DNA from: Intoshia linei | Taxonomy: Eukaryota; Animalia; Orthonectida | Direction of reading: 5' to 3' | DNA length: 64,000 nt | Assembly: GCA_001642005.1 (NCBI GenBank) | Contig: LWCA01000059.1 | Location: 1-64,000, forward strand | Shown here: piece after piece, positions 2,763-45,168 of the stretch | Numbering within the stretch: the first letter of the stretch is position 1 | How the letters are laid out: each line of letters opens with the position of its first letter | Program-made: the position numbers and the translations under genes | The notes under the pieces: model-generated | Databases searched by the model: none | Told to the model about the DNA's origin: nothing | The model's input: only the letters and a program-made list of their open reading frames with translations

Positions 2763-5700
2763 TTATACATCAATACTTTTGATAGCATTCCAAGCATAAT
2801 CAACATCTTGTTCCTTGGTTGACTCGGCACAAATTACGAAACGTAGTATAAAAATGTCTTTAACCATAGCACCGATAATGTGTATACGTCCATCTCTGTT
2901 AATTTTATCCAATATATCTTGATTGCAACTATTGGAACCCTGAAAATAATATAACATAAATAAAATGTACCTTGTGTCGAAAACAAACTAATCCCATGTT
3001 GACAGGATGCGTGATATAAAAATGGTCATCCTTTATCACATAACTTTCAAAACGATGTGCCAATTTGATTTGCTACTTTTATTATATACATATAAACTGT
3101 ATTATAGACGTTCTCAACCTTTATCTTTTAACGGCCACGTTAAAATTTAAATATATTTAAATTAAAACTTTAGTTTTAATTATTATGGTCGTAATTAATT
3201 ATTAAACACTTTCTTAATAAGATTATTTTACCGTAAACATTAACTGAATAATATTTTAAAGACTCTTGGATTTTGAGGATTGTTAGAATATGCAAAATTA
3301 CGATTTTTCCATGCATGAAACGCTATGCACCAGTTTAAGTGTCCCACAATGAAAGTATAATATAGATTTGGATACTCAACCTGTCATTTGAAAAATTTTA
3401 AAATTTTTGCTTGGTGTTCTTAAATTAAACGTTTTTTATGATTTTTATAGACATTTTTTCTTATGTCCATTATATTGTTATAAACATCTTAGATAAACCA
3501 TATTATTATTTAAATTTTGTTGAAAATATAATAATCTTATTGTCTAATCTCTTTTAGAGGTTAAATTAAAATAAATTTGATATATAACTACATTAAAGAA
3601 TCTCTGAATAAATATTCTAATTTATCGTAAATCTTATGTTTGACCTTATATTAAAAAGTAATCTTAATTTTAGATTGTAATATATAGTACAGTAACAATT
3701 ATTATATTTTACATTTAATACAATTTGGTATTTTTAACACATATCAAAATTCTTATATAATTATACATTAGGGCAGGGGTGGCCAATTTTTTACATACAA
3801 TGCACGATATTTTTATCATGCTATCTCAGATTAGCCAAATTTTTATGTGAAACTTCGGTTACTAATAGAATTTATACGTATAGAAATATAAAGTATTAAA
3901 TTAAACACAAAATTAACTTTGATATTGATATAAAATAAAATATTGAGAAAATTTAAATCCATTTTGAGAAAGTGATCAAAGTCAAAAATGTAACTTTATT
4001 TTATAATTATTATGATAGAAATATTTTAAATTGAATGGAATCTGATTTAAACTTTTTCAATTTTAACTAAAATGATATATTTCATTGTATTGTATTAATA
4101 CAATAAAGCAACCACAAATATTCTTACAATATAGTATTTATTTCATAAAAAATGTGAACGTATGCATATTAGAACTAATCTGTATTCAAAAATTTTTTCT
4201 TTGTGTAAATTGATACTAATACATTTTCTGCTAATTGACGATTTCATTAATAATCATATGATTAAAAGTAACATATTCATACAGATATTTTTTAAGACAC
4301 TGGCATAAATTTTATCTTAATTTGACGTTTAAAAGTGACCACTGTATTAAGGCCTATATTTTAATCTAAATTTAAAAAATAATATGATTTAGCAAGGATG
4401 TTTATAACAAATGACTTGTTATTGATAGAAAAAAATTAAATGATAATAAATTTTAAAAATACTTTGTGTATATTTAAAGATTTCAAACATCTACTGTAAT
4501 GAGAAAACGTCTATGTTGATAAACCTTATTTAATATTATATTATTTTATATTAATAAATACGTATCGAATATATTGTTGCAATCCATCAACTCCATAGGA
4601 TCTGATTACAAACCACAATTTTAAGGATCTAAATCTTCTCCCTAATGGAATTTGCCAATGCTAGTAATATGTTTATTGTATTATATTTATAATAAATTAT
4701 TGACTATAATATTTATATAAATCAGCTCTGAAGAACACGTTACCAGCGGGAAATTGTTGTCCATGTGGAATTTTATTGCTGCCCGCCACTTAAATTTTTT
4801 AATTTAGAGGATTTTTCATCTTACAGTTTATTTAGCTTATTTAGCTTAGGAGTGACATCTATACTGAATATCGATAGAGGGGGAAGAATAAGAATGAAAT
4901 TTGTAAACTGAGCCATTTAAATTAAATCATTAATGTAGTGAAAATTTAATCAAAATTTAAATTATAAACTCATTGGCTTGTAATTATATGTAGAATAACT
5001 AAATTTATTAATAAATACATGTATTATTAAAATGAATTAAAACTTTATCACTTAACTTAAAATTTGTAAATTTTTTTAAAGAAATATAAAAATTTGACTT
5101 TCAAAATTTTATAATGGAAATATATATAGAAATTGAAATAAACTGTTGATAAAAAACAAATCCAATATATACAATATAATTAAAATTATAATTTAATTCA
5201 GTGGCCACCAAACTACCACCCGCGTGCCAAACCTGGGCCGCAATTCAATTTTATTCGGTCCGCGAATTACAAAGTTATTGCAAAATATACCCGTCATATC
5301 TTACAAATTATCATATATCATCGACTTGTCATTTCTAGATCATGAGAAACATATAAATTAATTAACTTAAATTTTAATTAATAAATTACTCTAAAATCAA
5401 TAGCGTTTTTATCATTAGCATATTGTAAATATGAAGGGTTGATTTTGAATGTCTCTGTAAAGTATTTGTGGTTCTTTAACCTGTAATTTTAAATAAATTA
5501 AATTAAATTTTAATTACACAGTCCAACACCAAAAACATGCAAGGATGATGAATACATCATTTTGTTCGTCTCAACGAGCTGGTCAACGTTAATCACGTTC
5601 AAATTTGTTTTAAAATTGATGTTAAAGTTGCATAAATGCTCAAAATAGAGGATTTTAAAGCCATATGAAACACAATTAAAAATGCCGATTATTTGTTTTA

Positions 5701-10528: not shown

Positions 10529-12478
10529 ATGGAAAGTATTGTCGAAGAATCTTTAGAAAAGCAAAAATATCTCGCTGTCGATGAAGATGTTTACAATCCA
10601 GCTGACTTTTTAGAAACCTCAATTGATCCGACAGATGAACTTTACCCTATTGCGGTACTGATTGATGAAATGAGAAATGATAATGTTCAATTGAGGCTGA
10701 ACAGTATCACAAATGTAAAAACAATTGCCTTTGCTTTGGGACCTGAAAGAACTAGAAATGAATTGATACCATATTTGACTGACAAAATTCATGATGATGA
10801 TGAAATATTATCTGTCATGGCCCTAAAACTGGGTGATTTTATTTCTTTGGTTGGAGGAATCGAATATTGCCATTTAATTCTAAAACCACTTGAAATGCTG
10901 TGTTCAAATGAAGATACGCAGGTTCGTAAGCGAACTATGGAGTCTTTAACTAAAATTATTGACAATATGGATATATCAGCGATAAATGAACACGTTGTTC
11001 CAATGATACACAGATTACACAAAGCTGAATGGTATTCAATGCGATGCGCTTGTTCCTGTTTACTAATAAATTCATATTTACATTCTGATGAAGACACCCA
11101 ATCAGAATTTCGTAATTTGTACATTTCTTTATTGCAGGATCCAGTAGCAATGGTACGCAGAGCCACAGTAAGTAGGTTTACCAATTTTATCAAAGTCGTT
11201 GACTTTCGTCATGTATATGAAGAATTGGTTCCAATATTTCAAACTCTTATATCTGATGGACAAGATTCTGTTAGATTTATGGTAGCAGAAGAATTTGCAG
11301 ATGCTATTAAGATTTTAGTACCTTCAGAAGTGTTTGATGAAACAAATGAGACTAGTGATATTCAAGAACGAAAAAAATGTATCATTGATGATAATTTAGT
11401 TGAAAAATTTTTCAATTTTTTGGAGGATTTGGTTAATGATTGTAGTTGGAGAGTTAGATGCGTCATTGCTAAAAATATATTTAAATTTCAAGAGTCTTTC
11501 GGAAAATGTTTATCAAATGAAAAAATTGCCAAATGTTACGGAAAATTACTCAAAGATGATGAACCTGAAGTTAAATCAGCAGCATCCTTGAGTTTTACTG
11601 ATTTTATGAATGCTGTTAGGGAGGAAGAACGTGAAGGTATTTACACGTCAATTTTTTCAGAATGCATTGTGGCATTATCATCTGATGTCAATGAATATGT
11701 CAAAATTTCACTTTCTTCTGTAATAATGAAACTGTCTAAAACAATGGGTATCGATTTTACCATTTCCGACCTACTACCTATATATTTGCAGTTATTGAAG
11801 GATGAATGTTCAAACGTTCGTTTAAACATAATATCCAACCTTAATTATGTCAATAATGTGATAGGAATGACACAATTAACGGAATGTTTATTACCCGCCA
11901 TGTTTGATCTAGCTAATGATGAAAAATGGAGAGTTAGGTTGGCTATACTTACATTGACTCCAGTTTTGGCGTCTCAACTGGGTGAAGAATTTTTTAATAA
12001 AGAATTCCTTAGTATTTGTTTCAAATGGCTGGATGATCCAGTTTACGAGATACGCAGAAGTGCAGCAATTACATTTGATGAAATCATTCAAAATTATGGC
12101 AAAGATTGGGCCAATGAAAAAGTTGTACCACAGCTTGTTCTTAAATTAGAGACATCATCCAATTATTTACGCAGATTGTCTATCATTAACTGCTTGGCCG
12201 TTATTTCTGAGCCATGTGGCACTGAAATTGTTGAAAATAATATTATCCCTGCTTTAATCAAACTCACAGAAGACAAAATTTCTAATGTTAGATTCAATGT
12301 ATGCAAAGCTTTTTTAAAAATCGATCAACTCATAAGTGGTGATTTTTACTATCAAAATATTGAACCTATTCTTAACGGCCTCATCAAAAATGACAAGGAT
12401 TCTCTAGTTAAATTTTTTGCTCAACAAACAATTGACAATATTCACAAAAAATCTATTCCACCAAAAAATTTTGATTAA
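10529..12478 (+). CDS. PPP2R1A: Protein phosphatase 2A 65 kDa scaffold (A) subunit, single exon
   Basis: 649-aa ORF with LYPIAVLIDEMRNDNVQLRLNSI..LGPERTRNELIPYL and HEAT repeats (SWRVR, NVRLNII, KWRVRLAI, NVRFNV). A-alpha versus A-beta paralog assignment is not meaningful here. Confidence 0.95.
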   Translation: MESIVEESLEKQKYLAVDEDVYNPADFLETSIDPTDELYPIAVLIDEMRNDNVQLRLNSITNVKTIAFALGPERTRNELIPYLTDKIHDDDEILSVMALKLGDFISLVGGIEYCHLILKPLEMLCSNEDTQVRKRTMESLTKIIDNMDISAINEHVVPMIHRLHKAEWYSMRCACSCLLINSYLHSDEDTQSEFRNLYISLLQDPVAMVRRATVSRFTNFIKVVDFRHVYEELVPIFQTLISDGQDSVRFMVAEEFADAIKILVPSEVFDETNETSDIQERKKCIIDDNLVEKFFNFLEDLVNDCSWRVRCVIAKNIFKFQESFGKCLSNEKIAKCYGKLLKDDEPEVKSAASLSFTDFMNAVREEEREGIYTSIFSECIVALSSDVNEYVKISLSSVIMKLSKTMGIDFTISDLLPIYLQLLKDECSNVRLNIISNLNYVNNVIGMTQLTECLLPAMFDLANDEKWRVRLAILTLTPVLASQLGEEFFNKEFLSICFKWLDDPVYEIRRSAAITFDEIIQNYGKDWANEKVVPQLVLKLETSSNYLRRLSIINCLAVISEPCGTEIVENNIIPALIKLTEDKISNVRFNVCKAFLKIDQLISGDFYYQNIEPILNGLIKNDKDSLVKFFAQQTIDNIHKKSIPPKNFD

Positions 12479-12571
12479 ATTTATATATTAACCAGCAAAT
12501 ATCCTCAATTGTGTTTCTATAGTTTTTAGATATGTATCTTAAATAAACTATTTGTAATATTATTTTGTATA

Positions 12572-14608
12572 ATGACAATCGAGCAAAAAATTAAAGATAT
12601 AGAAGATGAGGTACCATATTCATATGTTGTTTTTCCTTTACTTATCGTTTCTGTTTATGCTTATATTTGAATATTCAATTTAAATCCGAAGATGTTTAAA
12701 TCTATTTACAAAACGTGCTTTAAATTTGATTATCTTCAGAATCTAAAATTAATGATATGAAAGTCACATTTCCTTTACTGTTTGAATTTGAAACATAAAA
12801 TAGTTATCCATCATGACATGATATTCGAAAATATAATTTTTATAATTTGGACAAATGATGCTTTTATTTTACACAAATTTCGTTTAAGACACGAAAAAGT
12901 CTATCGGTACTATAGATTCGCATTTGCTCTTTTTCATTAGCTACAAATATATACTGTATTACAAAAAGGTCAATTCTAAAGATTAAAAAAAATCAAAATT
13001 AGTAAGTGGATCTAACTAAATTAATATAAAACGTTTAAATGTTTTCAGTTTATGGACACCGGTTCTGGAGACGTGACGGGGACATTTGTTATTCCAATTG
13101 AACCCTTTACTGTATTCGTTATTTATAAACAATACATTTAAAATATAAAATGTTTCCAATCCATCTCGCGGTCCCACGAAAATTTTGTAAAAAACGACAG
13201 TGAGAAACTAGTCAGCATTACTAGCTATCAAAATTAAAACTTATTTTCCTTTGTTAGTCGGCTCTTTTAATTATTTTGAAAAAACATTTTAAAATATTTT
13301 TTAAAGTGAAATTAATGTAATGTACAGATGAATCGAACCCAAAAGAATAAAGCTACCATGAACCACCTTGGTATGCTTAAGGTAGGACTGAATAGGGTTC
13401 AGTGTTTATTTTATTTATTTAGGCTCGCATGGCGAAACTAAAACAGCAATTAATCAACCCAAAAGGTGGCGGAGGAGGTGGTCCAGGTGAAGGTTTCGAT
13501 GTAGCTTCAACTGGTGACGCTAGAATTGGATTTGTCGGTTATTTGGTATTATTATTATCTTATATCATGTTTAGGATTCCCCTCAGTCGGGAAATCGACC
13601 TTAATGACCAATTTAGCCGGTATAGAATCTGAAGTTGCTGCCTATGAATTTACCACACTAACGACAATCCCTGGAGTAATTAAATACAAAGGTGCCAGAA
13701 TCCAGCTACTTGATTTACCGGGAATTATAGAAGGAGCAAAGGATGGAAAGGGTCGCGGGAGACAAGTTATTGCAGGTTCATTTTTTTTGTATCTATTAAA
13801 TTTTTTAGTGGCTTATACGTGCAATCTACTTTTCATTGTATTGGATGTTTTGAAACCGATGATTCATAAAACCATTATTGAACGGGAACTAGAAGGTTTC
13901 GGAATAAGACTAAACAAAGGACCACCAAATATTCGTGTTAGAAAAAAGGAAAAGGGAGGCATTGGTATAAATATTCAGGTTCCACAAACTGAACTAGACC
14001 ATGACACTATAAAAGCTGTTCTAAGCGAGTATAAAATACACAATGCGGATGTTACATTATTTATCGACGCTACTGTAGATGAACTCATTGATGTGATTGA
14101 AGGAAATCGTGTTTATATTCCCTGTGTATACCTTTTAAATAAAATAGACCAAATATCAATTGAAGTAAATAGTTCTATCGAATAATATTAATTTTTTTAA
14201 GGAACTTGAAATTTTACATAAAATGCCAAATTGTGTACCCATTTCAGCTAAAGATTTTTGGAACTTTGATGATTTATTAGAAATGATGTGGACAAAACTC
14301 AGCTTAATAAGAATGTATGCTTTTTAAAATTTAAATGATTATAATGTAGTTATACCAAACCAAAATTTGAGGAACCAGACTTCAAAAGTCCTGTAATATT
14401 AAAATGTGCACGATCAGTTGAACGTTTCTGTCAAAAGATACATAAAGAAATACTGCAACAATTTAAACAGTAATTCTTTTTTAAACTTTGTTATATTAAA
14501 ATATATAGCGCTCTTGTATGGGGTACATCCGTTAAACACCAACCACAAATCGTAGGCAAAGATCATTTATTGGACGACGAGGACGTTATTCAAATAATAA
14601 AAAAATAA
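12572..14608 (+). CDS. DRG1: Developmentally regulated GTP-binding protein 1, multi-exon
   Basis: Exon 1 [13 protein letters not shown] (12572-12610), then [60 protein letters not shown] and a TGS domain ending VIQIIKK* at 14608. Confidence 0.95.
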
Positions 14609-25109: not shown

Positions 25110-28100
25110 TTATTGTAATAAAAGTAAACATTTTTTACACTGATTAACAAGAATATTTTTTATTGTTTCATTTCGCTTGTTCTTTAGATTCAAATTTAAT
25201 TTTCCCTTATAATGTTCAATTATATATTTTACTCCTTCGCATGCATGCATTTCTGCGGCCTATATAAAATATAATATTAAATTTATTATTACTTATAAAA
25301 AGATTCATTAAATGTGATGAATAATTACTGTATGTAATGGTGTATTATCCATGTAATCTGTAGAATTGATGTCGGCGCCAGCTGTTACATAGCAATTAAC
25401 TTTTTCGTAATGGCCTAATGATATTGCTCTAAAATTTTAAATATAATCCCTATATGTTCGGTCTATTTTTACCTTGTATTCGTATCTAATTTGAAAAGTA
25501 TAATATTTAGCAAAAAAATACAAATATTTTCACTTAGCATATATAATATATGTATTAGGAGTGTGAACGAATTTTTATATCAAAAGTGCACCCTTCCACC
25601 ATATGAACATTTTGAAAATATTCAATTTGCACCCAATCTTACCTCTCAACTGTTAAAAAAAACCCTGGGGCATCGCCTCTAAAGTTTTGAACAATATATG
25701 ACAATTTTCTTAAAAATATTATTTTAAATATAAAATTTTTTATACAAATAGCTATAAAGATGCCCAAAATTATCGTCTAAAAAATCATGAACGCCGAATT
25801 AATAAAAAAACCGATATTAATAAGAACTGAATAAATATAAATTGAAAATTAATTGTTATGGAAATAATTATTACTATGAAATTTACTATACAAAAAAAAT
25901 TAAATTTTGATTACTATTCATATTTTGAAGTGCTTTGCCCTAGGGTTTTTTTAATCTTTTTTATATAATTTATTGATAATTGTGTATCATTCAACCCCAT
26001 CTTCCACGTATGGGGTGGCACTTTTGTATTTTCGCAAAAAAGTGAAAAAATTCACACCCCTAATATGTATGCTGTATTATATATAATACATACAGCAGCC
26101 ATGTAAAACTTGCGGTCCACATCGACTTTGTATATGTATATATACTATATTATTATTAAATATTCCAAAATTAATTGTGTATCATTATCAGACCTAAACT
26201 ACGAGAAAATCACATTGACGAGATCAACGATATAATTAAAATTATGATAATTATCTCTTACTTCAAAATTAGTAAAAATACGTGCAAGTCATATCAAATT
26301 AAATTCTAGTTTTATCATTCTAATGTTAATTTAATAAAATCAATGGATACAAAAAAATAAATAATTAAATCATTGAGTATTACACACTGATCTCGATTCA
26401 TATTATAATGACTTTCAAAGGTAATACTAGAAAAAATTTTTAAAAAAATGGCCCGCTTCGTATTTCAGTTTGACATGGCTGACATACAGTGTAAGTGTAT
26501 GTTATACACGTAGAAATATTAATCTATTAAGTATAATATCAGTGGTTCTTATATTAGTTTCAGTTATTGAACAGGGAAATGTAAATTACAGTATAGATAT
26601 CAAAACTTTTAGATGCTTCACAAAAACACTATTAGCCCTAGAAATTGAATTTAAACATTATTTTCCTTTTCTTAATTAAATGAAATTTTATTAAACTTAT
26701 ATTTTTTTGAGTTGACGATATAGATATTAAAAAAACTATTTTGATGATGAATGTTCGTTAGAATCAATAAGCTTTTATACAAAAATATATAAAGATTTTA
26801 CTCCCGTGCAACGTGTAATACACAGTGTGTATATAACTGGTTTTCTACCTCTTAGATATAAAAATATAGTAAATTACACATATTTAAAATCATAAAATTA
26901 ACTCTACTAACTAAATTAGTGGAAAAGCTGAGAACCACTGTTTAAAAACGTACTACTAAATTACTGGCAAATATTATATCCAACAAGATGCGGATTATTA
27001 AGGTAAGCCCCAGTTTTGATTAGAAGTTTTATAATTTCGAGATGAATAAATTGTACAGCATTATCCAGTGGTGTAAAACCAAATCTATCCTTCGCGTGAA
27101 CAATGGCTCCCTTTGCCAACAAAAACCTAGTTATGCCAACATTTCCTTCAGAAGCTGAAATGTGTAAAGCCGTTCTTCCGTCATAGTCACTGCAATTAAT
27201 TACACCGTCCTACATTTTATGAATACATTATATTGTAAGAATACATGTTGCAATATATTATTCAAAGCCGAAATATCATTGTTTCGAGTGGCAGAACAAA
27301 CTAGATAAGGCATTATTGCATCACATAATTCATTAGATGCCTGTTTATAAATAAATTTTGATTGGTAATATATAATTTTACAGCTCTTGTTTTTAAATTC
27401 ATAGCTTCAGATATCTGTTCAATGAGGGAATTGTCGTATAATGCACCATCTGTGGTCGTTTTTATGCATCTCATTTCTCCTCTCAAGTTTGATTCCATTA
27501 ATTTACATTTATCAGAGTAACTTGCATTTTTACCTAATACATAGCTCAACTTTGCCAATGTTGTTTCTACCGTCATATCACTACCAGAAACAACGCCAAT
27601 ATCATGAAATATCTGTTGTACCGTTGAAAATTTTTATATAAAATATACCTTTCCCGTTTCATATGCTGAGGAAACTGAACCTTTTGCACATTGACTTATA
27701 TTAACAATTAAAACGCCTCTATTAATAGCTTTCTTTAATATATCAATAAATTTAACATTTTCATAAGGACCATTTCCTGATCCATACGATTGTATTACGA
27801 ATCCTTGAATAGGAGGTTGACAAAATGTTTCAATCTATTCAGTTGGTCATGTAAATATATGATTACTATTTGATCGGGTATTCCAGGGTTAAGTCTAATT
27901 ACACCCACATTTTCGGACATTTTGCAAAAAATATCGAAAGGTTCAGACACACCCGCAATTAATACTTGATTCCAGTTAACTAAATTTATATTAGAAATAA
28001 AAAATTATTAACCATTTATATTAATTCCGAAAGTGACCAAAGGAACTTCGTTGTGAGAATCGAAAGCATTAAAACCTGCACTGTCATATTTAGTAGTTCT

Positions 28101-29384
28101 ATTTCCTCTCAAAATTTTATTACTAAAAGCAATGAGCACCTATAATTATATTGTATCCTATATAAATCTTTATATAAATTACTTCAGGTATGTAATAATA
28201 TCCGGCTGTAACAAGGGCATCAATAAAATTATCGCGACCGTCGCTTCGAAGTTCAAAAATTGGAACCTAAATGTCAGAGTGAAAAATAATTATATTGTTT
28301 ACTTGCGATCCTGTCAAAATGACAGGTTTGCCTAAATTTTCCAACATAAACGATAAGGCAGAAGCTGTATAAGCCATAGTATCTGTTCCATGTAGTATGA
28401 CAAATCCGTCGAATTCTTTATAATAATTCTATCCAAAAAATAACCCAATTTATTACTTAAATTACTTTTATGTCATTTGCTATTTGTACCCAATTTGAAA
28501 TACACATGTTAGCCGAGTCTAACAACGGATTGTATTCAATAACATCGTAAATAATTTTAAAATTGTCCTTTTTACCCCTAAATAAGTTTAAATTTAAATT
28601 TGATGTATTTACGGAAGAACAAGAGGAATTTCGTCCAATTTAGGAAAGTGTTCATTAATATACTCGATATCGTTGAATAGAGTAGAATTGCATAGTTCAC
28701 TTTTCAAAACATTTTTGGATGGAACATAAACTAAAACATTAGCGTTGAATAATTATATTCATTTTCAGGGGTAAAAAAAAGTTAATTATAAAAGACACAG
28801 GCATATTTCAATTTTTTTTAAATCAGAAAAACTCTAAATAATTCAGATTTTATAATTATAAAATTTAATATAAGTTATTTTTTCTTAATCATCTAATACA
28901 GAGGTAGGGGAAGCATTTAATATTCGAAGACCGCACTAACGTCCCAAAAATTTAATAAGGCCGCACCTTTCTAAATAAAAATTAAATCAACTACTGCAGT
29001 GCTTCTCATGTGGGTGAATACGAAAATTTTAGATGATTAAAGTGAATTATACATTTTTAGCATTTGTATTCAAATTAATGAAATTTTATGAGAAAAAACC
29101 AAAATTTTACCAATATTTTTTTTAAAATCCCATTTCACCAAAAATTACTATAAAATATTTTAAATGAAAAATTGTTCAGAAGGCCGCACTTTTACCACTT
29201 CTGATCTAATATATATTAAATTATTTTTAAAATATACCACTGATTACGCAATATTACCTCCATTTTTTGTTTTCATCCCAATTGTACCACCCGTGTATAT
29301 GACCAATATCGACTTAAAACACTCATTGACAGTTAACAAAGAAATCAATTTACCAATATCAGCAATATGATTTTTTTTATTCAT
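25110..29384 (-). CDS. ASPG: L-asparaginase with ankyrin repeats, tandem copy 2
   Basis: Same exon structure and motifs as copy 1 ([52 protein letters not shown]); ATG at 29384, stop at 25112-25110. Confidence 0.92.
25556..26062 (+). mobile_element. hAT-type MITE family 1, copy 1 (in ASPG copy-2 intron)
   Basis: TIR TAGG(A/G)GTGTG...CACACCCCTA; perfect 8-bp TSD ATATGTAT; homologous in inverted orientation to 45741-46246. Confidence 0.9.
26540..26940. mobile_element. MITE with CAGTGGTTCT TIRs
   Basis: CAGTGGTTCT ... AGAACCACTG inverted termini; no clear TSD. Confidence 0.55.
28899..29203. mobile_element. hAT-type MITE (in ASPG copy-2 first intron)
   Basis: Ends CAGAGGTAGG / CCACTTCTG; perfect TSD ATCTAATA; related sequence starts at ~61127. 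Confidence 0.8.
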
Positions 29385-29437
29385 AATAAAATCAAATGGA
29401 TTTAAATTTTATTTTATGTACAATAAGATGAATGACA

Positions 29438-30827
29438 TTAAACGTTGAACTTATTTCTCAATAGACACATGGATATCCAAATTGCTTCCTAATAGAAATA
29501 TAATGATGAGTACAAGATTGAATATGTTATATTGAGATAAACCTCTGTTCTAATAGTTTTAGTTCCTTGATTTGGACATGTATTAACATAAAATTCGAAA
29601 AAATCTCGTACATTATCAGGCATATCACTATCTAATAAAACTGCATTCTCTAATCCTTTTACACCTCCAAAGACTACTAGACAGTGTCTAAAAAATAATA
29701 ACATAATAGCGATTTGCATTTAAAAATATAGAAAAAACCTAAATTTGGGGAAATCCACCTTTTCTACATTATCGCCTTTATCCGAAGTACCTATGATTAA
29801 ATCATACCCGTTTTTAGAAAAAGAACATTCATTAAAAACATTTGATAATTTATCTGCATATCGAATATAATACCCCCTGTAAAAATTTTCCTCCATATTG
29901 TAACGATATGGGTTTTTTATAAAACTGTCAATTTTATCTAAATATATATTTTTTTTAAAATTATATTTTTACTTTTTTTCATAGATACGGTAATTCTTTC
30001 ATTTAATTCAAATGCACCATCTACATGAGCCATAGAATCCAAGCCAACATTTACCAAACATCGAGTATCATTAATTTTATCTACAATTATTCCCTCTCGG
30101 TATTTACATTCATCTGTGGATTGACAATGATGAGTCATGTTGGTTGGATGCAATAAACCAGCAAATTTTAAATCTTGATGCATGTCAAATTTCTGACGTC
30201 GTAAATATGCTGGACATTCCAAATAATCCAGGATTCGCATCATTTTTTTGCACGCTTCCGTCGATTTACTAAAAAAATAATAACATTGATTACAAAAATT
30301 ACCTATCATTTGGATTTTCATTAAAAATAATAATTTCATCAATAGAATATACCGCTAAAACTTTTGATATCTGAAAATAAAAGAAATGTGAGTCGTTTTT
30401 ACCTGATAAACAAGGGCTGTCTGTAAAATTGGATTTTGAACATTTGATAAAATCGATGCTGGAAGTGCTACTGAAATTGATCCGTTAAAATCTGTTAAAT
30501 TAGATGAAACAATGAAAGTTTAGTGTCATATCATAAAATTATACAAAAAGAAGTAAAGGAATATTTACTTTAATGTTCACGTAATACTTTATTTAATATA
30601 CCTGTTTTATTTTTTCTAATGTTTTTCATAGCTTTTCTTAACTAAATATACATTAAATATTCCATAAATATTTTTTACGTGTATTAATGATTTGGAGGGT
30701 GTGTATAAATCTAAATTTTATAATAAATATAAATGTATGATAAAATACCCTTCACAATTTTAATTGATCCATTAAATTTTTCTTTTTTTGCCATTTTTTT
30801 AGGTGGTTCTATCACTTCAGATTTTAA
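29438..30827 (-). CDS. SPOUT1: SPOUT-domain methyltransferase C9orf114/CENP-32 (possibly the C-terminal part of a LYAR fusion)
   Basis: ISVALPASILSNVQ..LVYQISKVLAVYSIDEIIIF, ILDYLECPAYLR..DLKFAGLLHP..HH..YREG, YDLIIGTSDKG, LVVFGGVKGLE, VNTCPNQGTKTIRTEEAI; stop at 29440-29438. The 5' boundary is uncertain (ATG at 30794, or fusion with LYAR). Confidence 0.9.
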
Positions 30828-31064
30828 CTAAAACGAAATATCACTAAATATTTCAGCATTAACTCATCATTCATGAAGACGTTAATATTAAATCAATATG
30901 GTTGTATAAAAAATCGTAAAATGATAAACACAACACTGAATTGCAATCTGGGGTAAAATGATGTACAACAAAATCGGCCTGTAGGTTTGCCTGACTTCGC
31001 AGTACAAACTTTGTACATATTTCGAGACAAAATAAATTTTTTCTCTATGATAACATAAAATTAC

Positions 31065-32124
31065 GCAGATTTCCTTGAGTTTTTTATTTTTTATATAATC
31101 ATCAATAAATTTCCATGCATTTTCGACTGTATTTGTATCTCTAATTTTCAAACTATTCGAAACGAATGCCTAAAAATTATATCACATTAAAAGTAAATAC
31201 AATATTTTTTCAATAATTAGCCAGTTCCGTAGTTTACCAATCCAGTATAAATGTATGTCTAATTATCTTTGTATTTTGGAAATGTTCATAAACAGGGGCC
31301 AATGTATGGAAAAATTATTTAATAAAAATTCATAGTATTATGTACGATTTGTGTTATATATTTCGCAAAATCACGGTAAAATTGGTGCCAACATTGGCGA
31401 ACTAGTTGAAGAATATTGTAATTGTATCCAAATATAATAAACAGTTTTTACAACAATGATGTATTTACCATAAATTTCTTAATTTTTTTGGGGATATTTG
31501 TAGATTGAAGTAATTTTTGGTAAACATATTTATCCTTTGACGTTTTTACAATAGCCACATTACATGCTTCATGAACCATCTAATATAAGAGTTATTTCAT
31601 ATAAATATAGTATTATAATATTACATTGGTCCAGTCTGCTTGCTTCTTATCACCCTTGGAGTGATCAATTTGGTTAACGTCAAAATTTGGCCCATATTTA
31701 TTTTTTTCAGAAACGCACATTCTATGACTGTCAAAAGTATCCAAGCTAAATATTGATAAATAATAACAATAATATACAAACAGGTCATATACATCCGAAA
31801 ATGACTATTCTCAACCTATCGGATATCGCCACTTCTGAGAAATTTCAGATTGTAACTAAATGATGAAAGAATTTTGATTTGATAATACAGAGATTAAATT
31901 ATACAAATTATGTATAAGAAAAATTTAAGAATAAGAAATTGGTACTAATATGTATTATTTAAAAAATTTCATGAAAAAAACTAAAAATTAATAAATATCA
32001 ATTACCTAAATGTTTTTTGACAATCCATACAAGTGACCATAGATTTGCAATTATATTCAATGTGATTTCTAACCATTTTCTTTCGAAGAGAATCTCCACA
32101 ATTTTCACACGAAAACACTACCAT
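31065..32124 (-). CDS. LYAR: Cell growth-regulating nucleolar protein LYAR (C2HC zinc fingers); 3' end unresolved
   Basis: MVVFSCENCGDSLRKKMVRNH...C..VTCMDCQKTF..FDSHRMCVSEKNKYG..KGDKKQADW..NIPKKIKKFMAFVSNSL...W. Unspliced, the ORF runs to 30888; otherwise it splices at 31064 into the SPOUT1 frame. Confidence 0.9.
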
Positions 32125-33275
32125 TAATATCAAATTAAAGACTTCACGTGATTAAAATAAATAAAGTTACTATCTATTTAAGATTAGTCATTTTTGATAT
32201 TCAATTTTACTATAAATTTTATACTAACGTAATTACTAATTAGTCGTATTGACTTTGGTTTAATTGACCCCACAAATACACAATATTAAATTTTCTAACC
32301 ATTTTTTTTCGATCTTTTGGTTAATTGTACCGATATTCATGTAACCTTCGCTTAATGCAGCTAAATCAAATCTCTTCAAATTGGTAATTTATGAATTACC
32401 TTGAATTAGTGTGGTATAATTCTAGAATCCATTAACCACACTTTGATGGTTAACTGTACTCAGTACAGTTAACCTTATATTATAGTACACTGTAATGTCA
32501 AAATTATCAAAATTTTTATTGAATATTCAAATATTACATTTAAAGTAGTGTTCAAAATGGTTCAAATTAAAATTGTACATTTATAAAATTAGCCAAATGA
32601 GTAATTCAACGTAAAAACGACAAATTTTTATAAAATTAGTAACTTTTTGAAAAGATAGAATAATACATATACCCGTTTACAACATTTGTAAATTAAGTAA
32701 AATTTTAAAAATCTATAATTATTATAAAATGTTGATAAACTTAATTTTTAAATTTTAAATCAAAATCAGTTATTCTAGCCTAGAACTTCGAACCTATCGT
32801 AACCGAGACCCCTTTTCACGGATTTGAACGAATTTTTTGTAAAATGGGGGCCATGTTTCCAAAGTGAGCATTAAAAAGATTATCTTTTTGAATATCATAA
32901 CTATTTTGTGTTACATTTAAAATGTCAAGTTAAGAGCCTTAGAGAGGTCATACAATATGACACTATGCATCATTTTGTAAAAACATTTTTTAGGGGTAAT
33001 TTTTCAATTTGAAGTGACTTCGATCTTGGTAGGTTCGGCTCTCGGGATAATTCAAATTTAATCATCAAAAAACTTATGATTATCGCACATAGTCAGTATT
33101 CAAAAATTTAAACTAAGTTTAAAACTAATGTTATATTCAATCTTTGTACTATGTAGTATATGATATTAACCATGTTAATAATAATAACTTGTTACATCTA
33201 AGTTGAAAATGATCAATAAATAACCACAAATAAAGATATGTTGACGAAAATTTGCTTAAAAACATTTCCAACATT

Positions 33276-35820
33276 ATGATTATATTTCAAATTTTGCTAA
33301 TAGTAAAATATATTCACGGATACAACAAAAAATTGTCTGGCAATTTGCCAATAACTGAATATACAATACCATCTACTGCATATTACCCTTGCATAACTCG
33401 GAATGGAATTAAAATTTTTGGTTGCACATCTGATTATGGGGGAAATTCAGGGATTGTAAACTTTCTTCTTCCAAGATCCGAATATACCTGGGAAGATGAA
33501 TTCCACACAAATGTTATTAATAACAATGAAAATGTTGTTTATTTTATAAATGCTGACATGATCAATGAGTAATTTTTTTATAATAAAAATATTTATTAAT
33601 TTTAGAAAAACTTTTAATTTTATATTTTTAAAACCCGATAAAATTGCAGGGATTGTATTTTATGATGATACCGGAAAATATAATCATTGGAATGATACGC
33701 TATTTAGAAAATACATGTGTAATTTTTAAATTATACTGATTATTGTAAAAAATGTATAATTATGATAAATTTAGACGATTATTCAAAAATTCCCATAATC
33801 TATTTAAAAGATGTAACAACTTTGAAATTTATCAAGGAAGAGGTATACTAAAAATATAATGGATATCATTCCAATTTTATATTTCAGTGTTATGAAAAAT
33901 ATAATGCTAATGATAATATGGTTCGTAAATGTAAAGCCAACTTGCGGACAAGCATGACATCCCAAGCACCAGTAATGAAATGTTTGAATAGATCTGATGA
34001 TAATTTCTCTTCCGCAATTTTTCAATCTCCCGGTATTTAACTATCAGTACACACACGGGGAAAGTGCTCCCGCGTTATGATTATTTAAGGGTTATATGAC
34101 AGTGGGTTTAAGGTGGATAAAGTCCACTAGGAATATATAAAATATCATGCCAGTGTGGAAACTTGATACAATTCATTTAAAAATAATTTAATATTTTTTG
34201 TCGTCATCAACTATAATATATTTATTCCCTAATTAAAATATTTAGTTAGATGTAATTTATTGGGCGGAAAAAGCGTTCATTACATGACAGAATCAGATGA
34301 ACCAATTTCATATCTGTTCCAAATACCTGTAAGTTCATTTGACTGTATTTATGAAAAATAAAACATTTAATTGATTAGATTGATGGATTTTCAATGTTTG
34401 ACGGATTTGCACCTAGTATTACCACTACAGTTGTCCCACTTGCTCTATTTTTAAATTTTATGAATTCTTTAAACATGAAAGATTTAAAAAAAGAAATAAT
34501 TTTCTCATTGTTTGGTGGAGTAATTACATTAAATATTAAAATTAATTCATTTAAACAGGAAACAATGAATTCGATTGGAAGTACTCGAATGAATTTAGAC
34601 TTAAAAGATAAAACGTTTCCCAGAATGTTCAAAGTTTCTAAAACTGCTAAATACTACAATTTCAAATATTACAACATTCTATATGATTTTAATGCTACGC
34701 TTCAAGAGAATGTAATATTTAAATAAAAATGTGTATTCAGTATTAGTGTTTGAATTATTTTGACCAAATGGAACAGTACAAAACTGATTCAAAAGCAAAA
34801 AATACAGGACTCCTAGCATGTCATCAAAAGGAATTTGTAGAAAATGAGTAAACTAATTTTATTTTTTATTCCAGCATTTAGATTTCTATTCACGTCAATT
34901 TTTGATACCATTAAAAACTTTGAAAGGAATTGTAAAGTTAATAAAACTGATGTTAATGAGGCTATTGATAGTCATACCAAAAAAATTATTCAATTTATTT
35001 TTGGATATGAGAAAGTAAAACTATTTGACAGCAAAAGAAAATTTGACGTAATATAATTTAAATTGAGAGTTTATAATTTAGTAAATTATATTTAAAGTAA
35101 ATTAAATTTACTAGCCAAACGAATTTATAAATTGTGTTGCTGTCAATTCCAATTGTACGTTATTTAATGCAGTCATTTCAGATCATGAAAAAATTCAATT
35201 AAGTAAAACCCTTATAAATTATATTACTAAAAAGAATATTATTTAATATTTTCTTGTATAAAATATTTAGGTGGTCCAATGGATTTATATGTTGGTATAA
35301 ACGAAAATGAAAATATGTTCACATTCATGGTCAAGCGTTTAGTGGATTATATCACCGGAGAAAATGTACCCAATGTTAACATTACTGAATGCCACAACAT
35401 GACTACCAAAGTATTTTAATACTGTATTTATCTTAAATAATTTTAGAACTACACGTATATATGGATGAATGGATACAAAAAAGAAGGGTTATGTATAAAA
35501 TCATCAGCATTTTATTCCAAAGCAATGTTAGAAAACGCCACAGATGATAAAGGTAGATTATGTTAAACATGTAACTAAAATATTCAGTGTACAGATATAT
35601 AAATTCAAAACATTTAATGGCGGAAAGTAGTTGGAATACTGATAGTATACAATTTACCCTTTATATTGTACAGTCAAAAAATTATCAAGTAAATTGAAAA
35701 TATTGTTATTATAATATATTTTAATTTTATTAGCGAACAATTATTTCTGTTTCAATAGTATGGACAATTGTTGTTATTATAGGTTTGTGGTGGATATTTA
35801 AACATGTAACTTTGAAATAA
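33276..35820 (+). CDS. NCSTN: Nicastrin (gamma-secretase subunit), divergent and shortened
   Basis: Signal-like N-terminus, PCITRNGIKIFGCTSDYGGNSGIV, KIPIIYL..CYEKYN..C...MKCLNRS, IDGFSMFDGFAPS, FSLFGGETMNSIGSTRM..KTFP, FTSIFDT, C..NSNCTLF, YVGI, AESSW, a TM helix and TAA at 35818-35820. Confidence 0.85.
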
Positions 35821-35839
35821 ATACATTTTATATATAAGT

Positions 35840-38800
35840 TTACATAAACGGTGGGGTACAGTCATGTTGAATTGTGAACCCGCTTTGTTGTATAATATAA
35901 TGTGCTGCTTTGTTTCCAGTTATTATTCCTCTTTTATAATCATTTTCATTTTTTATATAAACCGAAAGGAAGCCTATAAATTATTATAGTGAAATAAAAG
36001 CAAACCTCCAACAAAGGCATCACCAGCTCCGTTGGTATCTACAATATTTTCTGGATTAATTTTTGTAATTTCAATTTTTTCAAATTTTACTGGCTCACAA
36101 TCATCAAATTCTGCATAAAATACTGGATCAGAACCACACGTCATGATTAGCTTTAAAGAATGGTTATTGTATTGCGAAATTATTTTTTCTCCTAATAATT
36201 TTAGTAAATCTTTGGGTTTTCCTTCTATATTGTATAATTTTGCCAAACTCAAAAATTCCTATAATTTAAAAATAAGAGTAACCTCTAAACCCGACACGTA
36301 TAACCTAATTATAATTAAGTTATTATATTAATATTTGTTTCATCATAACAACTTTCATTCTACCCAAAATATTTTCCTATTTGTGTTTAAAAATTTATAT
36401 ATATGGCAGTCGTGGGGTAAAGGTTATACATGTCGCTGCGACATATCTGCAACATTGTCGCAATGTTGCGACTAAATGGTCATAAATAATATTTATTAAA
36501 CAGATAATAAATAACCTGATCGTTTCCAATAATAATGTGAACATATTGCATCAATTTAACAATGTACGTGGATGCCAGATTACAAATAAATTCTGCTGAT
36601 ATATTGTAAACAATACGCTTGTTACCATCAAAAAGTTCCTTTGCCAATTTTATTATACATTGTGGCTTTAACATAAAGAAATAACCCTACATATAGTGTA
36701 TAGAAATTTCTACAAAGATAACATTTAAAACCATGAATAATTTATTATTTGTATTTTATGTAAATTATATTGCTCGCCGAAATATTATAATATAAATAAA
36801 TTTAAATGGGGCCTCATATTTTCAAATTGATTATTTTATAAATCATAGCATTTTCAAGTTGATAAAGTTGTGTACAGAATATATAATAAATGGTTTTTGT
36901 TAAAAAATTAACAATCGCCCCATTAAAAAATTTACAATTATGGTAATTAAATTAAATCATAATTGCGTTTCAATTAATTCAGACTTCGTGGTCCTGTATA
37001 ACTAAAAACTATTTATCTATGCAATTCGAAGAAAATAAAACTCCAGTTTATTTAAGAAAGTAAGAGGAATCGAGTTTTGAAAATTACATATTTCTATTAC
37101 AGCTTTTCGAGAATATTGTTTTATTGCAAATTTCAGAAATTGAGTCCTTCAAAGTCAAAAACCCCAATTGTCCTTTTTTTAAATTCAAACCATTATAGAA
37201 ATATAAAAAATACACAATCTCATAAAGATTTTAAATTCATAAACATTATGATAATTTCAAAATATTATATCTTCAGTTCAAAAACAAATTATCCTTTTTT
37301 GTAAAAATTAAAAGTCCTATAATTGTATACAACAGGGGTGGGGACCCTTTTGCGTGCAACGGGTCAAACCGCACATTTTATTTTATCACCTATCGCACCA
37401 AGAAAAATTCTTCAATTTTACTTCGTTCCATTTTTTAAAAATTTTTTTAATCAATATTACAAACCCTTATATCTATTTTCACTAGTTTAAGAATATTTTA
37501 AGGTTAATCGTCAATACATTTACTCTTTAAATGTATTTGAATGAAGTAAATTCTCATATTCGGCAAAATTTATAAAAATAATACTAAATCATTATGGTTT
37601 ATTATTAATCAGTTAATTCACTTATACTTATGAATGATTTTGCTTTTTTCTGACAATTGAATAAGACCTGGTTTAATGCTACTTGTGTATTAATTAAATT
37701 TAAACTATTTGAAATTTTTAATTTCACTCGCGTGTAGCAAAAATTTATAAAAGGGTCGCATGCGGCCCGCGGGCCATACTTAGCTCATATATGGTATACA
37801 ACATAAATTCTGGGATATTTTTTAAAATCATAAGCATTACATAAATCGCAACCTCAAAATAGTGCATTTTCACAATCAAAATCCCAGATTACCCTTTTTT
37901 TTAAAAATGAAAACAACCATAGAATTTAAAAGAAATATACAGATGATACAGTAATTTACAGGTAACACAAATACAAAGTTTTAATTTGAACTAGTGACGC
38001 CTTCACGGTCAAAAAAGAACTTTAGTATTCATCTTTTTTATATAGAAACTATATTATTAAAACAAAAAATTTGAAATAATGAACGGTCTTACAATTAAAA
38101 AAAAAGATTATTCTTAAATGGCTTATCCAGTTGATGTAGATACAAAAATTTAAAACGTAAAACGTCAAAACGTAACTAATTTTGAAAAAACTTTAGTTGT
38201 ATATTTTAAATTAATCATTAATTTAATGACAAGTTATAGTATACAATGTTAATACATTAATGTTTGTATTTCCATATTACAGTAATAATCATCACACAGA
38301 GAATACTGCATTATTAGGTAAATCACAAAGTTATGTCGTTTTTATTGATGTAATTGATTAAAAACGCTATATCATCGATAAGATTTCACATATTTCCAAA
38401 TATAAAATTTTTTTTTGTAACAATCATGTGTATGACCACATCAGATGAGAACGTAATTTATTTAAATCTACATTTATTCAATGGTTATTTAGACGAAATA
38501 TTTTAATGATTTTGAGGGACATTTACGTCATATTTTACTGTATGAGTACTTTAAGGACCGCAGTGTAGTGGTATCTACCAAAAATATATGTGCTGTGTAT
38601 GTTAAGGATGTTTTAAAAAACAGAAAATGTCAAATATGGTTTAATAGATTTCGTGATGAAAACCACACCCTAATGGATTTCCAACGTTCCGGTAAATCAG
38701 TGGTTTTGTAAGATTTAATGAAGTAATAGATTTAATAAATGATTCCACTGCAAGTAATATTTTCTATCAAAAACCACTAAGTTCTTTTTGGTGTAATATG

Positions 38801-42750: not shown

Positions 42751-45168
42751 TTACAGAAACGGTGGGTTTATATCGTGTTCAATGTTAAAACCGCTTTGTT
42801 GGATAATGTAATTGGCTGCTTTGTTTCCTCGTAATATTGCCTTTTTGTAATCATTTTCATTTTTTATATACACTGAAAGAAACCCTAATTTAATTTTAAT
42901 ATTTAAAAATGATATGTAAACCTCCAGCAAATGCATCTCCAGCACCATTAGTATCATTTATATCTGCATTGTCAATTTTTATTATATTTATTTTTTCACA
43001 TTTTATAGATTCACATTCATCAACTTCGGCATAAATTACAGGATCAGAACCACAAGTCATTATCAATTTCAGTGAATGATTAAAATATTCGTTTATTAGT
43101 TTTTTACCCAACGTTTTTAATAATATTTCATCTTTAACTGATATATCGTACAATTTGGCCAAACTTTCAAATTCCTATAATATTATATTATATTATATAT
43201 GTTAAGATTTATTATTTCAAAAATTGAAAAATTTTTGTTGATAACTAAGACAATTTTTGAATGTAATTTATGTTTTTCATTGAAATACTATTTATATTGT
43301 TAACGTACATTATAGTATATTTATTGTATGTATCAATAAATTCATTCTTACAAGAGAATGAAAATAGTCCTATAATTATAAAAAACAAATTATGCAACAG
43401 TTTTCAAATCACTAACATAATCGTAAATCTTACCTCAAGTGACACTTTTTTTGAAAATGAAAAGGGTTATAGAATTTTTACAATATTATGCTTATTCGAT
43501 AAATTTATGCGTAATTTTAATTATATTGTAATATAAAAATTTTTAGATCAATAAACCTGATCATTCCCAATTACAATATGAACGTATTTCATCAGTTTAA
43601 TAATGTGTTTCGATGCCACATGACAAATAAATTCTGCTGATATGTTGTATATGACCCGTTTGTTACTTTCATAATATTCTTTTGCCAATTTTAAAATGCA
43701 TTTAGGTCTCAACATAAATATATAACCCTAAATAAAATGCATATATATTGTAGTAAATAAATATTGCTAATGTCGAACCTACCGTATTCTACAATACCCT
43801 CTTCAGGTGGGGTAGAATCGAAAAATTTAGGTCAAATTGTAGGTTCTATACTGCTTAAATTAATTCATATTTTTCATAATTTACCTAACAAATTCGACAA
43901 ACGAATCATAAAAACATCGAGTTGATTTACAAAAAATAATATAATACCCAAATCTCTCAACTCTTTTAATATATCATCAGATATACTTCAATAAACAGGC
44001 TTAACGGATGTAGCTAAAATAACGATATACAAAATATTAAAAACTAAAGGTAAAGTAGGGAATACTGAATCTAAAACACTTTCCCCTAAAAGACACAATA
44101 AATTACGGTTGATTAGGGTAAATAGTTATATGAAGATAAATTTTGGTAATTTAATTATAATTATATACCGTAATGTAAAATATGTGCGAATCTCGTAAAT
44201 GATTCATATTGATGGGTGAAACCATAAAATCTTCGGATATGTGTTGAGTGGCACCTAGATCCGTTGCCAGTGATCTAAATTAAAATGTAAAAGTGTTAAA
44301 TTCAACTTGCCTATATCTTCTGTCTTTTGAAATCATGACACAACAAATACCTGTTTGGTGCTCTTTTGATATTTCAAAGTTTGTTATTAAATTCGATTTA
44401 CTGCATTGGATGTTTAACTGCCTCCCCATTTCGTCATCACCAATACAACTAGCATAAAATATAACATTTTCTTCGTTTATAATCCACTAAAAAATAAACA
44501 TAATAAATAAACGACTAAATAAATAAAAATACGTAAGGAAAATGTGATTACTGAATTTTCAGATCGCCCTGGACTTTATTTTGTTGAATATACTGGAATC
44601 GTTTTTCTTCAGTTAAAATTGAAATTTATCATGTTTACATTTTCAAAAACGGGGCCTGTATAATTTTTTGATATAAAAAAGTGCCCATAAGATGAAAAAG
44701 GTTGTCGATCCCTGGTGTAATATATAATATATTTCTAATTTTAAAAATTTTAAAAAACCTGCATCATTCTGAAAACATTTAAAGATGATCCACCTACATG
44801 AATTACATATGAATACTTTACATTTAGTAATTACCTGGTACGACATCACATTTATAATTTCTTGAAAATTCAAGTATTCTAAATTTATTTATATTAAAAC
44901 AAGTACAAGTATGTGCGAATAACGGAAGTTCCACAGTATTTAATTAAAGGTAAAAGTAAATGTTAGGAAATATAAATTACAAATTTTTTGCTTTTTCATC
45001 TATGAGAATGATTCCATTTTTTTCCAAATTGTATCTATAATATATATTGATATAATATCAAAAATTGATTATATTGTAGTACAAAAAATACTTTTGAAGG
45101 AAGGTTGTGTCGACAATAGCACTTTTATCGACTAAAGCATTTCCAAATGCAAATATTTTATTTTTCAT
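42751..45168 (-). CDS. ADK: Adenosine kinase, tandem copy B
   Basis: FGNALVDKSA, PGGSSLN, CIGDDEMG, RSLATDLGA, GNDQE, DTNGAGDAFAGGFL; same exon structure as copy A, with one GC-AG intron (44275-44310). Confidence 0.9.

Follow-up and report, generated by a model that had tools for sequence, protein, structure and literature searches.

One open reading frame of 484 amino acids, spread over 13 exons on the minus strand of the genome of the parasite Intoshia linei from ATG 32124 to TAA 29438, joins an N-terminal LYAR zinc finger module to a SPOUT1 methyltransferase domain (positions are those of the window, the whole 64-kb stretch of DNA analyzed). We consider the chances about even that the fused LYAR-SPOUT1 protein is made, and it is quite conceivable, if a little short of even, that two proteins are made instead. 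Two genes a short distance apart would be about as likely as a fusion, and DNA alone cannot show a fused protein.

A sequence-only reading of this DNA had proposed the single frame, and our reconstruction reproduced it: each of the 12 junctions has GT-AG ends and keeps the phase, and the 1455-nt coding sequence has one stop, at its end. The LYAR part occupies exons 1 to 4 (32124-32006, 31745-31625, 31579-31469, and 31169-31065), a linker occupies exons 5 to 7 (30827-30749, 30710-30679, and 30641-30602), and SPOUT1 occupies exons 8 to 13 (30491-30403, 30370-30303, 30268-29973, 29937-29739, 29687-29543, and 29488-29438), all on the minus strand. Between exons 4 and 5, the phase-0 donor at 31064 after ..KLKEIC and the acceptor AG at 30829-30828, with downstream sequence that opens LKSEVIEPPKKMAKKEK, were found where that reading had placed them. 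By chance the phases would agree in 1 in 3 cases and the 11 codons ahead of the ATG would stay open with a probability of ~0.4, so these two features alone are not significant. The fused model is already public, being letter for letter the I. linei protein OAF71349.1. No sign of transcript support was found for that model, which is the lone member of its cluster; a search for transcript-derived fragments with exon 4 plus its read-through as the query returned zero candidates, and the only I. linei reads listed in a 2018 reanalysis (10.1101/282285) are genomic.

Both halves of the protein have the identities first proposed for them, by Pfam profiles as well as by matches to human proteins. The SPOUT1 (PF02598) methyltransferase domain, encoded by exons 8 to 13 (29438..30491, minus strand, ending in TAA 29440-29438; residues 204-484), scores 272.8 bits against the Methyltrn_RNA_3 profile, with residues 208-478 covering profile positions 2-302 of 302. 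Residues 207-479 align with the human SPOUT1/C9orf114 structures 4RG1 and 8QSU at E values of about 2e-62 (1.8e-62 for 4RG1), the structural match of the domain has a TM value of 0.77, and the knot-region motifs GTS..G, VVFGG, and NTCP.QG..TIRTEEA are conserved with human C9orf114. No other locus in the genome matches PF02598, and the best matches of this one among relatives are animal SPOUT1 proteins. In flies and humans, SPOUT1 is the 28S rRNA (uridine-N3)-methyltransferase that forms m3U at a peptidyl-transferase-center uridine (PMC11641110), and Intoshia SPOUT1, with its complete domain, is a predicted 28S rRNA m3U methyltransferase. Exon 8 contains no ATG of its own and a stop in the same frame lies just upstream, as had been claimed. 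Read-through of that upstream intron, intron 7 (30492..30601, minus strand, 110 nt), meets an in-frame stop, and the intron, with AATAAA at 30593 and ATTAAA at 30597 and 30574, could possibly act as an alternative 3' end. Downstream of the SPOUT1 stop, a 53-nt spacer (29385..29437, minus strand) that contains AATAAA and lacks any AG leads to ATG 29384 of an asparaginase-ankyrin gene model of 11 exons and 522 amino acids.

The LYAR module (exons 1 to 4, 31065..32124, minus strand; 152 amino acids) was delimited by the zf-LYAR profile and by alignment with human LYAR, and it contains two LYAR-type zinc fingers followed by a conserved middle region. The zf-LYAR profile (PF08790) matches residues 30-57 with 39.8 bits against a cutoff of 20.7, both C-x2-C...H-x(n)-C fingers are intact, and residues 1-142 align with residues 1-140 of human LYAR (E value of 7.5e-17). 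No second zf-LYAR locus exists in the 41.6-Mb genome. The lysine-rich middle and the C-terminal domain of LYAR were not found, in a comparison of low power that gave a single aligned stretch against the 379-amino-acid human chain. A word-index search with LYAR returned only the Intoshia protein itself, and since no other LYAR relatives were found, exons 5 to 7 were compared with LYAR C termini through one human PDB chain. Upstream of the gene, a CACGTG E-box lies 21 nt from the LYAR ATG (32145..32150) and may be part of the promoter of this ribosome-biogenesis gene; it is one of 2 such sites in the window, and because that count matches the chance expectation, its position alone is suggestive.

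The lysine-rich linker (30602..30827, minus strand; exons 5 to 7, residues 153-203) matches neither LYAR nor the SPOUT domain. A likeness of its KFNGSIK..LRK stretch to the LYAR C-terminal domain, suggested by the sequence-only reading, went undetected when phmmer was run against the full-length human LYAR chain, and exon 5 alone had no match in the PDB at E values up to 10. Exon 5 might have arisen by duplication of the first part of exon 8, with which it shares FNGSI and 14 of 15 identical nucleotides, but at a P value of 0.12 the resemblance is not significant. Within the linker, Met164 (ATG 30794-30792) is a candidate SPOUT1 start, with a second Met in exon 7; its context is A-rich and then G, and a stand-alone SPOUT1 beginning there would have 321 amino acids, a normal size. 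The 11 codons before Met164 nevertheless look coding, with a codon log-likelihood ratio (LLR) of +4.1, against +5.0 for exons 5 to 7 together. Among stop-free noncoding windows 1.3% reach +4.1, and among coding windows 12% do; the density ratio is ~4.7.

The 237 nt between the two halves (30828..31064, minus strand, GT..AG, phase 0/phase 0) would be an intron in the fused model and a 3' end plus spacer in separate genes. As a reference for splice signals, 21 introns of three local genes were curated by coordinates. Against these, the junction donor has a PWM score of 4.0, inside the real range, and the acceptor scores 4.0 versus a real-acceptor mean of 4.6. AG dinucleotides occur 16 and 35 nt upstream of the 30828 acceptor, versus an AG within 16 nt in 0 of 21 curated introns, and the tails of the four other long introns are free of AG over 59 to 101 nt. 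The single YTRAY branch-point motif in the tail lies 31 nt from AG 30828 and 15 nt from AG 30844, and in real introns where the motif was found this distance is 7 to 17 nt. In lacking an AG-free tail and in its branch-point distance, then, the junction intron is unlike local introns.

These departures bear on the better of the two rival models, in which the exon 4 donor is spliced to an upstream TAG acceptor (AG 30845-30844) that is followed directly by an in-frame TGA at 30843-30841 (30841..30845, minus strand). LYAR would then end at 152 amino acids, immediately after ..KLKEIC, and SPOUT1 would begin at Met164, its ATG at 30794 lying 46 nt downstream, either on a transcript of its own that begins within the gap or on one shared with LYAR, as in an operon. 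We regard this arrangement as somewhat unlikely. The placement of the TGA speaks for it, as does the sole YTRAY motif, whose distance from AG 30844 falls inside the real range. A 46-nt spacer would resemble the 53- and 93-nt spacers of neighboring co-oriented pairs, and across about 270 relatives SPOUT1 as a rule stands alone. The TAG acceptor itself argues the other way: its PWM score of -0.9 is at the low end of real acceptors (3 of 21 are as low) and is reached by 40% of decoy AGs, and a GAG precedes it by 19 nt. The spacer would also lack a poly(A) hexamer, and this model gives no reason why the 11 codons ahead of Met164 score like coding sequence.

In the other rival model there is no splicing at 31064. 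LYAR would read through to TAA 30890-30888, giving 210 amino acids with a 58-residue hydrophobic, Tyr/Cys-rich tail, SPOUT1 would start at Met164, 93 nt past the LYAR stop, and the public model would be an ab initio merging artifact in a very compact genome. This we judge distinctly unlikely. A hydrophobic end of unspliced LYAR had been described before, and exon 4 does stay open for 58 hydrophobic codons before that TAA, an outcome reproduced by just 1.3% of Markov-simulated gap sequences. The 93-nt spacing is also that of a neighboring pair, merged neighbor models are common in annotation, and the density of AG upstream of 30828 is that of ordinary nonintronic sequence. Codon usage in the tail, however, is noncoding: the read-through frame has an LLR of -11.6, compared with -8.1 (standard deviation [sd], 5.6) for local noncoding sequence and +7.4 (sd, 6.8) for coding chunks, of which 1.7% are as low. 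Both the fused model and the model with a 152-residue LYAR account equally well for this noncoding look. Since the same 152 nt (30895..31046, minus strand) are open in all three frames, the openness of the read-through is not specific to a frame and gives no sign of coding selection. Such a 58-residue hydrophobic extension is implausible for a protein of the nucleolus, one mutation would have been enough to shorten it, and no poly(A) hexamer lies in the 93-nt spacer.

The 152-nt stretch is free of TAA, TAG, TGA, and TGG in all three frames, and neither strand of the window has a longer run of this kind; it was stop-free in 0 of 100000 shuffles, and a pyrimidine follows 22 of its 22 TA or TG dinucleotides. 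It has a fold z-score of -2.0 and no alignment with other stop-free islands of the window, and it was rejected as a repeat, being single copy. Rfam gave no match over 27000-35000, so the gap offers no support for a snoRNA or another known RNA, and inspection by eye revealed no convincing arrangement of C/D or H/ACA boxes. Trans-splicing onto SPOUT1, raised as an alternative by the sequence-only reading, found no support: no SL1-like RNA was detected in the genome (a weak test, the Rfam SL1 model being a nematode one). No poly(A) hexamer precedes the acceptor in the gap, and the SPOUT1-asparaginase spacer has no AG.

The fused model is thus favored by codon usage, acceptor strength, and the missing poly(A) hexamer, and it is disfavored by the AGs 16 and 35 nt upstream of its acceptor and by a TAG acceptor whose use would stop LYAR immediately. 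Neither AATAAA nor ATTAAA occurs in the 237-nt gap, and AATAAA is present in both neighboring stop-to-ATG spacers inspected, a judgment calibrated on three local 3' ends because window-wide calibration was too noisy. Pairs of genes in the same orientation, separated by 53 and 93 nt, lie nearby, and merged neighbor models occur in annotation, observations that count against a fusion. Under the fused model, a single LYAR gene would have lost everything past its conserved N-terminal 140 to 150 residues, and the exon 4 donor at 31064 would have come to be spliced in phase to the acceptor at 30828, 33 nt upstream of the adjacent SPOUT1 start codon. One mRNA would then encode 484 amino acids comprising the LYAR zinc fingers, a lysine-rich linker of ~50 residues, and the complete SPOUT1 domain, possibly alongside a LYAR-only product made through the TAG acceptor 16 nt upstream. 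If the junction is used, the LYAR module could bring the methyltransferase to nucleolar preribosomes.

A natural gene fusion is a classical pointer to functional partnership. We think it unlikely, but worth stating, that this locus is a real "Rosetta stone" fusion, in which the nucleolar, preribosome-targeting module of LYAR is covalently tied to the enzyme that methylates the peptidyl-transferase-center uridine, in place of the LYAR C terminus that occupies the neighboring A site in humans. If so, LYAR and SPOUT1 would be expected to cooperate, physically or sequentially, as the large subunit forms in humans and other animals. The existence of a fused protein would also suggest, in a form open to testing, how an m3U methyltransferase that stands alone is led to its substrate. 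Both are nucleolar factors, and both work in ribosome biogenesis or on the large subunit (PMC11641110, PMC6821171, PMC7402621); no functional link between them was found in the searched literature. A true fusion would also suggest that extreme genome reduction in an orthonectid gives rise to new architectures through collapsed neighbor genes. A false one would serve as a warning that public I. linei proteins include merged models at gene pairs tens of bases apart.

The fused protein, if it exists, would be the only known joining of LYAR and SPOUT1. A search for proteins combining the two domains, proposed earlier for related taxa, found no other, the relatives covered being non-orthonectid; zf-LYAR occurs in 0 of about 270 SPOUT1 relatives examined. 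Over the core exon, identity to the next best SPOUT1, from unrelated organisms, does not exceed 51%, and the two closest other SPOUT1 proteins are from unrelated, intronless eukaryotes.

Compared with SPOUT1/C9orf114/Drosophila Ptch, the Intoshia domain is ~40 to 45% identical to animal orthologues over 98 to 100% of its length. Animal orthologues are typically 330 to 400 amino acids long with a lysine-rich N terminus of their own of 60 to 110 amino acids, whereas only 43 residues separate Met164 from the Intoshia domain, and the fused model adds the LYAR module upstream. Likeness to LYAR (human, 379 amino acids; PDB 6ZMI chain CE and 1WJV) comprises both C2HC fingers with all ligands and the region up to ..NSLK.....W. 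For human residues 141-379, which include the BRD2-binding segment 175-219 (PMC6821171) and a C terminus that sits in the ribosomal A site (PMC7402621), no counterpart was detected in Intoshia, and the fused model has the linker and the SPOUT1 domain instead. Merged models (P0197, P0248, vertebrate SPOUT1-aminotransferase, PF02598+PF00155) likewise join two unrelated neighbors in a single species. Unlike in those models, the upstream gene here has neither a recognizable C terminus nor a stop of its own before the junction, and this is the main reason to take a LYAR-SPOUT1 fusion seriously.

As the sequence-only reading had it, one in-phase GT-AG frame joins LYAR to SPOUT1: the model runs on the minus strand from ATG 32124 to TAA 29438 through 13 exons and 12 GT-AG introns, every junction in phase, and its 1,455-nt coding sequence specifies 484 amino acids in which both domains are recognized. 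The window is very AT-rich (GC, ~26%) and belongs to an assembly of 41.6 Mb. Exon-by-exon searches placed one half of a LYAR-type zinc finger on exon 1 and the other on exon 2, with successive portions of Pfam PF02598 (Methyltrn_RNA_3) on exons 10, 11, and 12. Queried against protein representatives, exon 10 retrieved at 100% identity a 484-aa public protein, P0001 (GenBank OAF71349.1, UniProt A0A177BAK5), which is "hypothetical protein A3Q56_00902" of the orthonectid Intoshia linei. A script checked the frame of the joined model and its identity with P0001, the two sequences being the same letter for letter, and protein searches were run on P0001. The gene model is already public, and its LYAR-SPOUT1 architecture appears to have gone unremarked so far. 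By phmmer, residues 1 to 142 resemble residues 1 to 140 of human LYAR (E = 7.5e-17); residues 207 to 479 resemble human C9orf114/SPOUT1 (E = 1.8e-62) and keep the knot-region motifs. Pfam scores were 39.8 bits for zf-LYAR and 272.8 bits for PF02598, the latter across the entire profile, and in the ESM Atlas predicted structure residues 199 to 484 match a SPOUT1 cluster. LYAR and SPOUT1 each have one locus in the genome.

Between the halves, no match was found for residues 143 to 206, which span the end of exon 4, exons 5 to 7, and the opening residues of exon 8. The linker KFNGSIK..LRK had been thought to recall the LYAR C-terminal domain, a likeness that was not detected: phmmer aligned the whole protein with the full-length human LYAR chain over its N-terminal stretch only. 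Exon 5 alone had no match in the PDB at E values up to 10. The FNGSI motif appears again where the SPOUT domain begins, in exon 8; at the DNA level 14 of 15 nt match, which is not significant (P = 0.12). Intron 7, at 30492 to 30601 on the minus strand, is, at 110 nt, longer than any other intron in the SPOUT1 half and contains three canonical poly(A) hexamers and an in-frame stop after 10 read-through codons; a possible role is as an alternative 3' end, yielding a LYAR-plus-linker product of ~213 aa.

The sequence gives evidence both for and against the 237-nt gap between the exon 4 donor at 31064 and the exon 5 acceptor at 30828 being an intron of a true fusion gene. P0001 is the sole member of its cluster, no transcript-derived fragments were found with either the LYAR part or exon 4 plus its read-through as the query, and a 2018 reanalysis used genomic read sets only for I. 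linei and transcriptomes for dicyemids (10.1101/282285); we thus found no sign of anything beyond the DNA behind the public model. We set a low prior for joinable neighbors in ab initio annotation being a true fusion, applied rough factors, and put the chance that a fused protein is made, possibly beside a LYAR-only product, at about even.

In favor of fusion are the 11 codons from the acceptor at 30828 to Met164, the candidate start (ATG at 30794 to 30792, exon 5) of a stand-alone SPOUT1. Under a codon model trained on the window's long open reading frames versus noncoding sequence they score +4.1, a coding-like value attained by 1.3% of stop-free noncoding windows versus 12% of coding windows and weighted at ~5 to 1. 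Position weight matrices built from 21 curated local introns give the acceptor at 30828 a score of 4.0 (real acceptors: mean, 4.6; SD, 3.3) and the donor at 31064 a score of 4.0 (real donors: mean, 6.1; minimum, 2.2). Neither AATAAA nor ATTAAA occurs within the gap; the spacer that follows the SPOUT1 stop and the one behind the stop at 12478 both have an AATAAA ~25 nt ahead of the next ATG. Because the third local 3' end judged, that of the asparaginase gene, also has no poly(A) hexamer within 120 nt, the absent signal is a weak point for fusion and was weighted accordingly.

The factor against fusion, at ~1 to 5, is the AG-rich acceptor region. The acceptor at 30828 has AG dinucleotides 16 and 35 nt before it; among the curated introns, none of 21 has an AG within 16 nt of its acceptor and 1 of 21 has one within 20 nt, and the other four long introns (110 to 527 nt) end in AG-free tails of 59 to 101 nt. 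At its 3' end, the gap does not resemble introns of this genome. One possibility, which we consider rather unlikely, is that exon 4 is instead spliced to the nearer AG (30845 to 30844), a TAG acceptor in a ATATTTAG context common to three real acceptors of this gene. An in-frame TGA directly after it would end LYAR at 152 aa, 46 nt ahead of Met164, a spacing typical of co-oriented pairs here (verified for two pairs), and a separate SPOUT1 from Met164 would have a normal size of 321 aa. The sole YTRAY branch-point motif in the gap tail is 31 nt from the AG at 30828 and 15 nt from this upstream AG, inside the 7- to 17-nt range of the curated introns in which the motif occurs. However, the upstream acceptor has a poor matrix score (-0.9).

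It is improbable that LYAR is left unspliced, reading through to TAA 30890 to 30888 (LYAR-210) beside a separate SPOUT1. Without the donor at 31064, LYAR runs for 58 more codons rich in Tyr, Cys, Ile, and Phe, described earlier as an atypical hydrophobic tail. Its codon score of -11.6 bits lies near noncoding sequence (-8.1; SD, 5.6) and is matched or undercut by 1.7% of coding chunks of the same length (+7.4; SD, 6.8). This noncoding, implausible tail counted in favor of fusion and against leaving LYAR unspliced. The length of the open read-through frame is no evidence of coding, because all three frames are open: from 31046 to 30895 (minus strand), 152 nt are devoid of TAA, TAG, TGA, and TGG in all frames, and no stop-free run on either strand of the window is longer. 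A pyrimidine follows each of the 12 TA and 10 TG dinucleotides in this stretch, C precedes every purine run of at least 2, and its stop-freeness was reproduced in 0 of 100,000 shuffles. It is single copy, matched no Rfam family, is only marginally more stable when folded than shuffled versions (z = -2.0), and scores as noncoding in all frames. Other long stretches free of stop trinucleotides lie at 5195 to 5337 and 37321 to 37437 (plus strand) and 44644 to 44736 (minus strand), all GC-richer islands in an AT-rich background, and at 33908 to 34023 (minus strand); these four align neither to one another nor to the stretch in the gap. The rest of the probability was assigned to other arrangements.

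LYAR and SPOUT1 probably have at least part of a transcript in common. Same-strand gene pairs here stand 53 nt (29385 to 29437) and 93 nt (12479 to 12573) apart, stop to ATG, and it is 53 nt past the SPOUT1 stop that an asparaginase-ankyrin gene, modeled as 11 exons and 522 aa, begins. The 53-nt spacer has no AG anywhere, which rules out classical SL trans-splicing into it, and the gene downstream must begin within, or overlap with, its upstream neighbor. In intron 1 of the asparaginase-ankyrin gene (28731 to 29257, minus strand; 527 nt, ~10 times the genome median), the short GC-rich motif GTGCGGYCTT occurs three times, near 29185, 28965, and 28945; it may represent a small repeat, a regulatory element, or an RNA element. 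At the other end of the locus, a CACGTG E-box at 32145 to 32150, 21 nt upstream of the LYAR start codon, is one of two in the window, a count at chance level; such E-boxes are typical of Myc-regulated ribosome-biogenesis promoters. LYAR introns 1 (31746 to 32005, 260 nt) and 3 (31170 to 31468, 299 nt), both on the minus strand of a genome with a median intron of 57 nt (PMC6543705), each have a GC-richer core with small palindromes; neither matched Rfam, and they are candidate hosts of small RNAs in a ribosome-biogenesis gene.

Apart from P0001, the 149 best SPOUT1 representatives were examined, and none has a LYAR-like N terminus. The search for both domains together in other taxa, proposed with the sequence-only reading, returned P0001 only: in a larger collection it alone carried PF08790 among the best 120 of 359 SPOUT1 homologues, in collections that include no close Intoshia relative and whose next best SPOUT1 proteins (44 to 51% identity) are encoded by intron-less genes in unrelated eukaryotes. 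In the larger collection, two vertebrate models (P0197 and P0248) combine SPOUT1 with a class I/II aminotransferase (PF02598+PF00155); both probably arose by read-through or by merging of adjacent genes and are a reminder that annotation does merge neighbors. The literature searched yielded no functional LYAR-SPOUT1 link. A fused protein would retain the conserved LYAR N-terminal module, the methyltransferase would take the place of the LYAR C-terminal half, and the module may tether the enzyme to nucleolar pre-ribosomes. In known systems, SPOUT1/Ptch is a nucleolar enzyme that makes m3U on a universally conserved uridine in the peptidyl transferase center of 28S rRNA (PMC11641110), and LYAR, which binds immature ribosomal particles, promotes both the processing of pre-rRNA and the transcription of rDNA (PMC6821171); its C terminus has been observed in the A site of inactive 80S ribosomes (PMC7402621).
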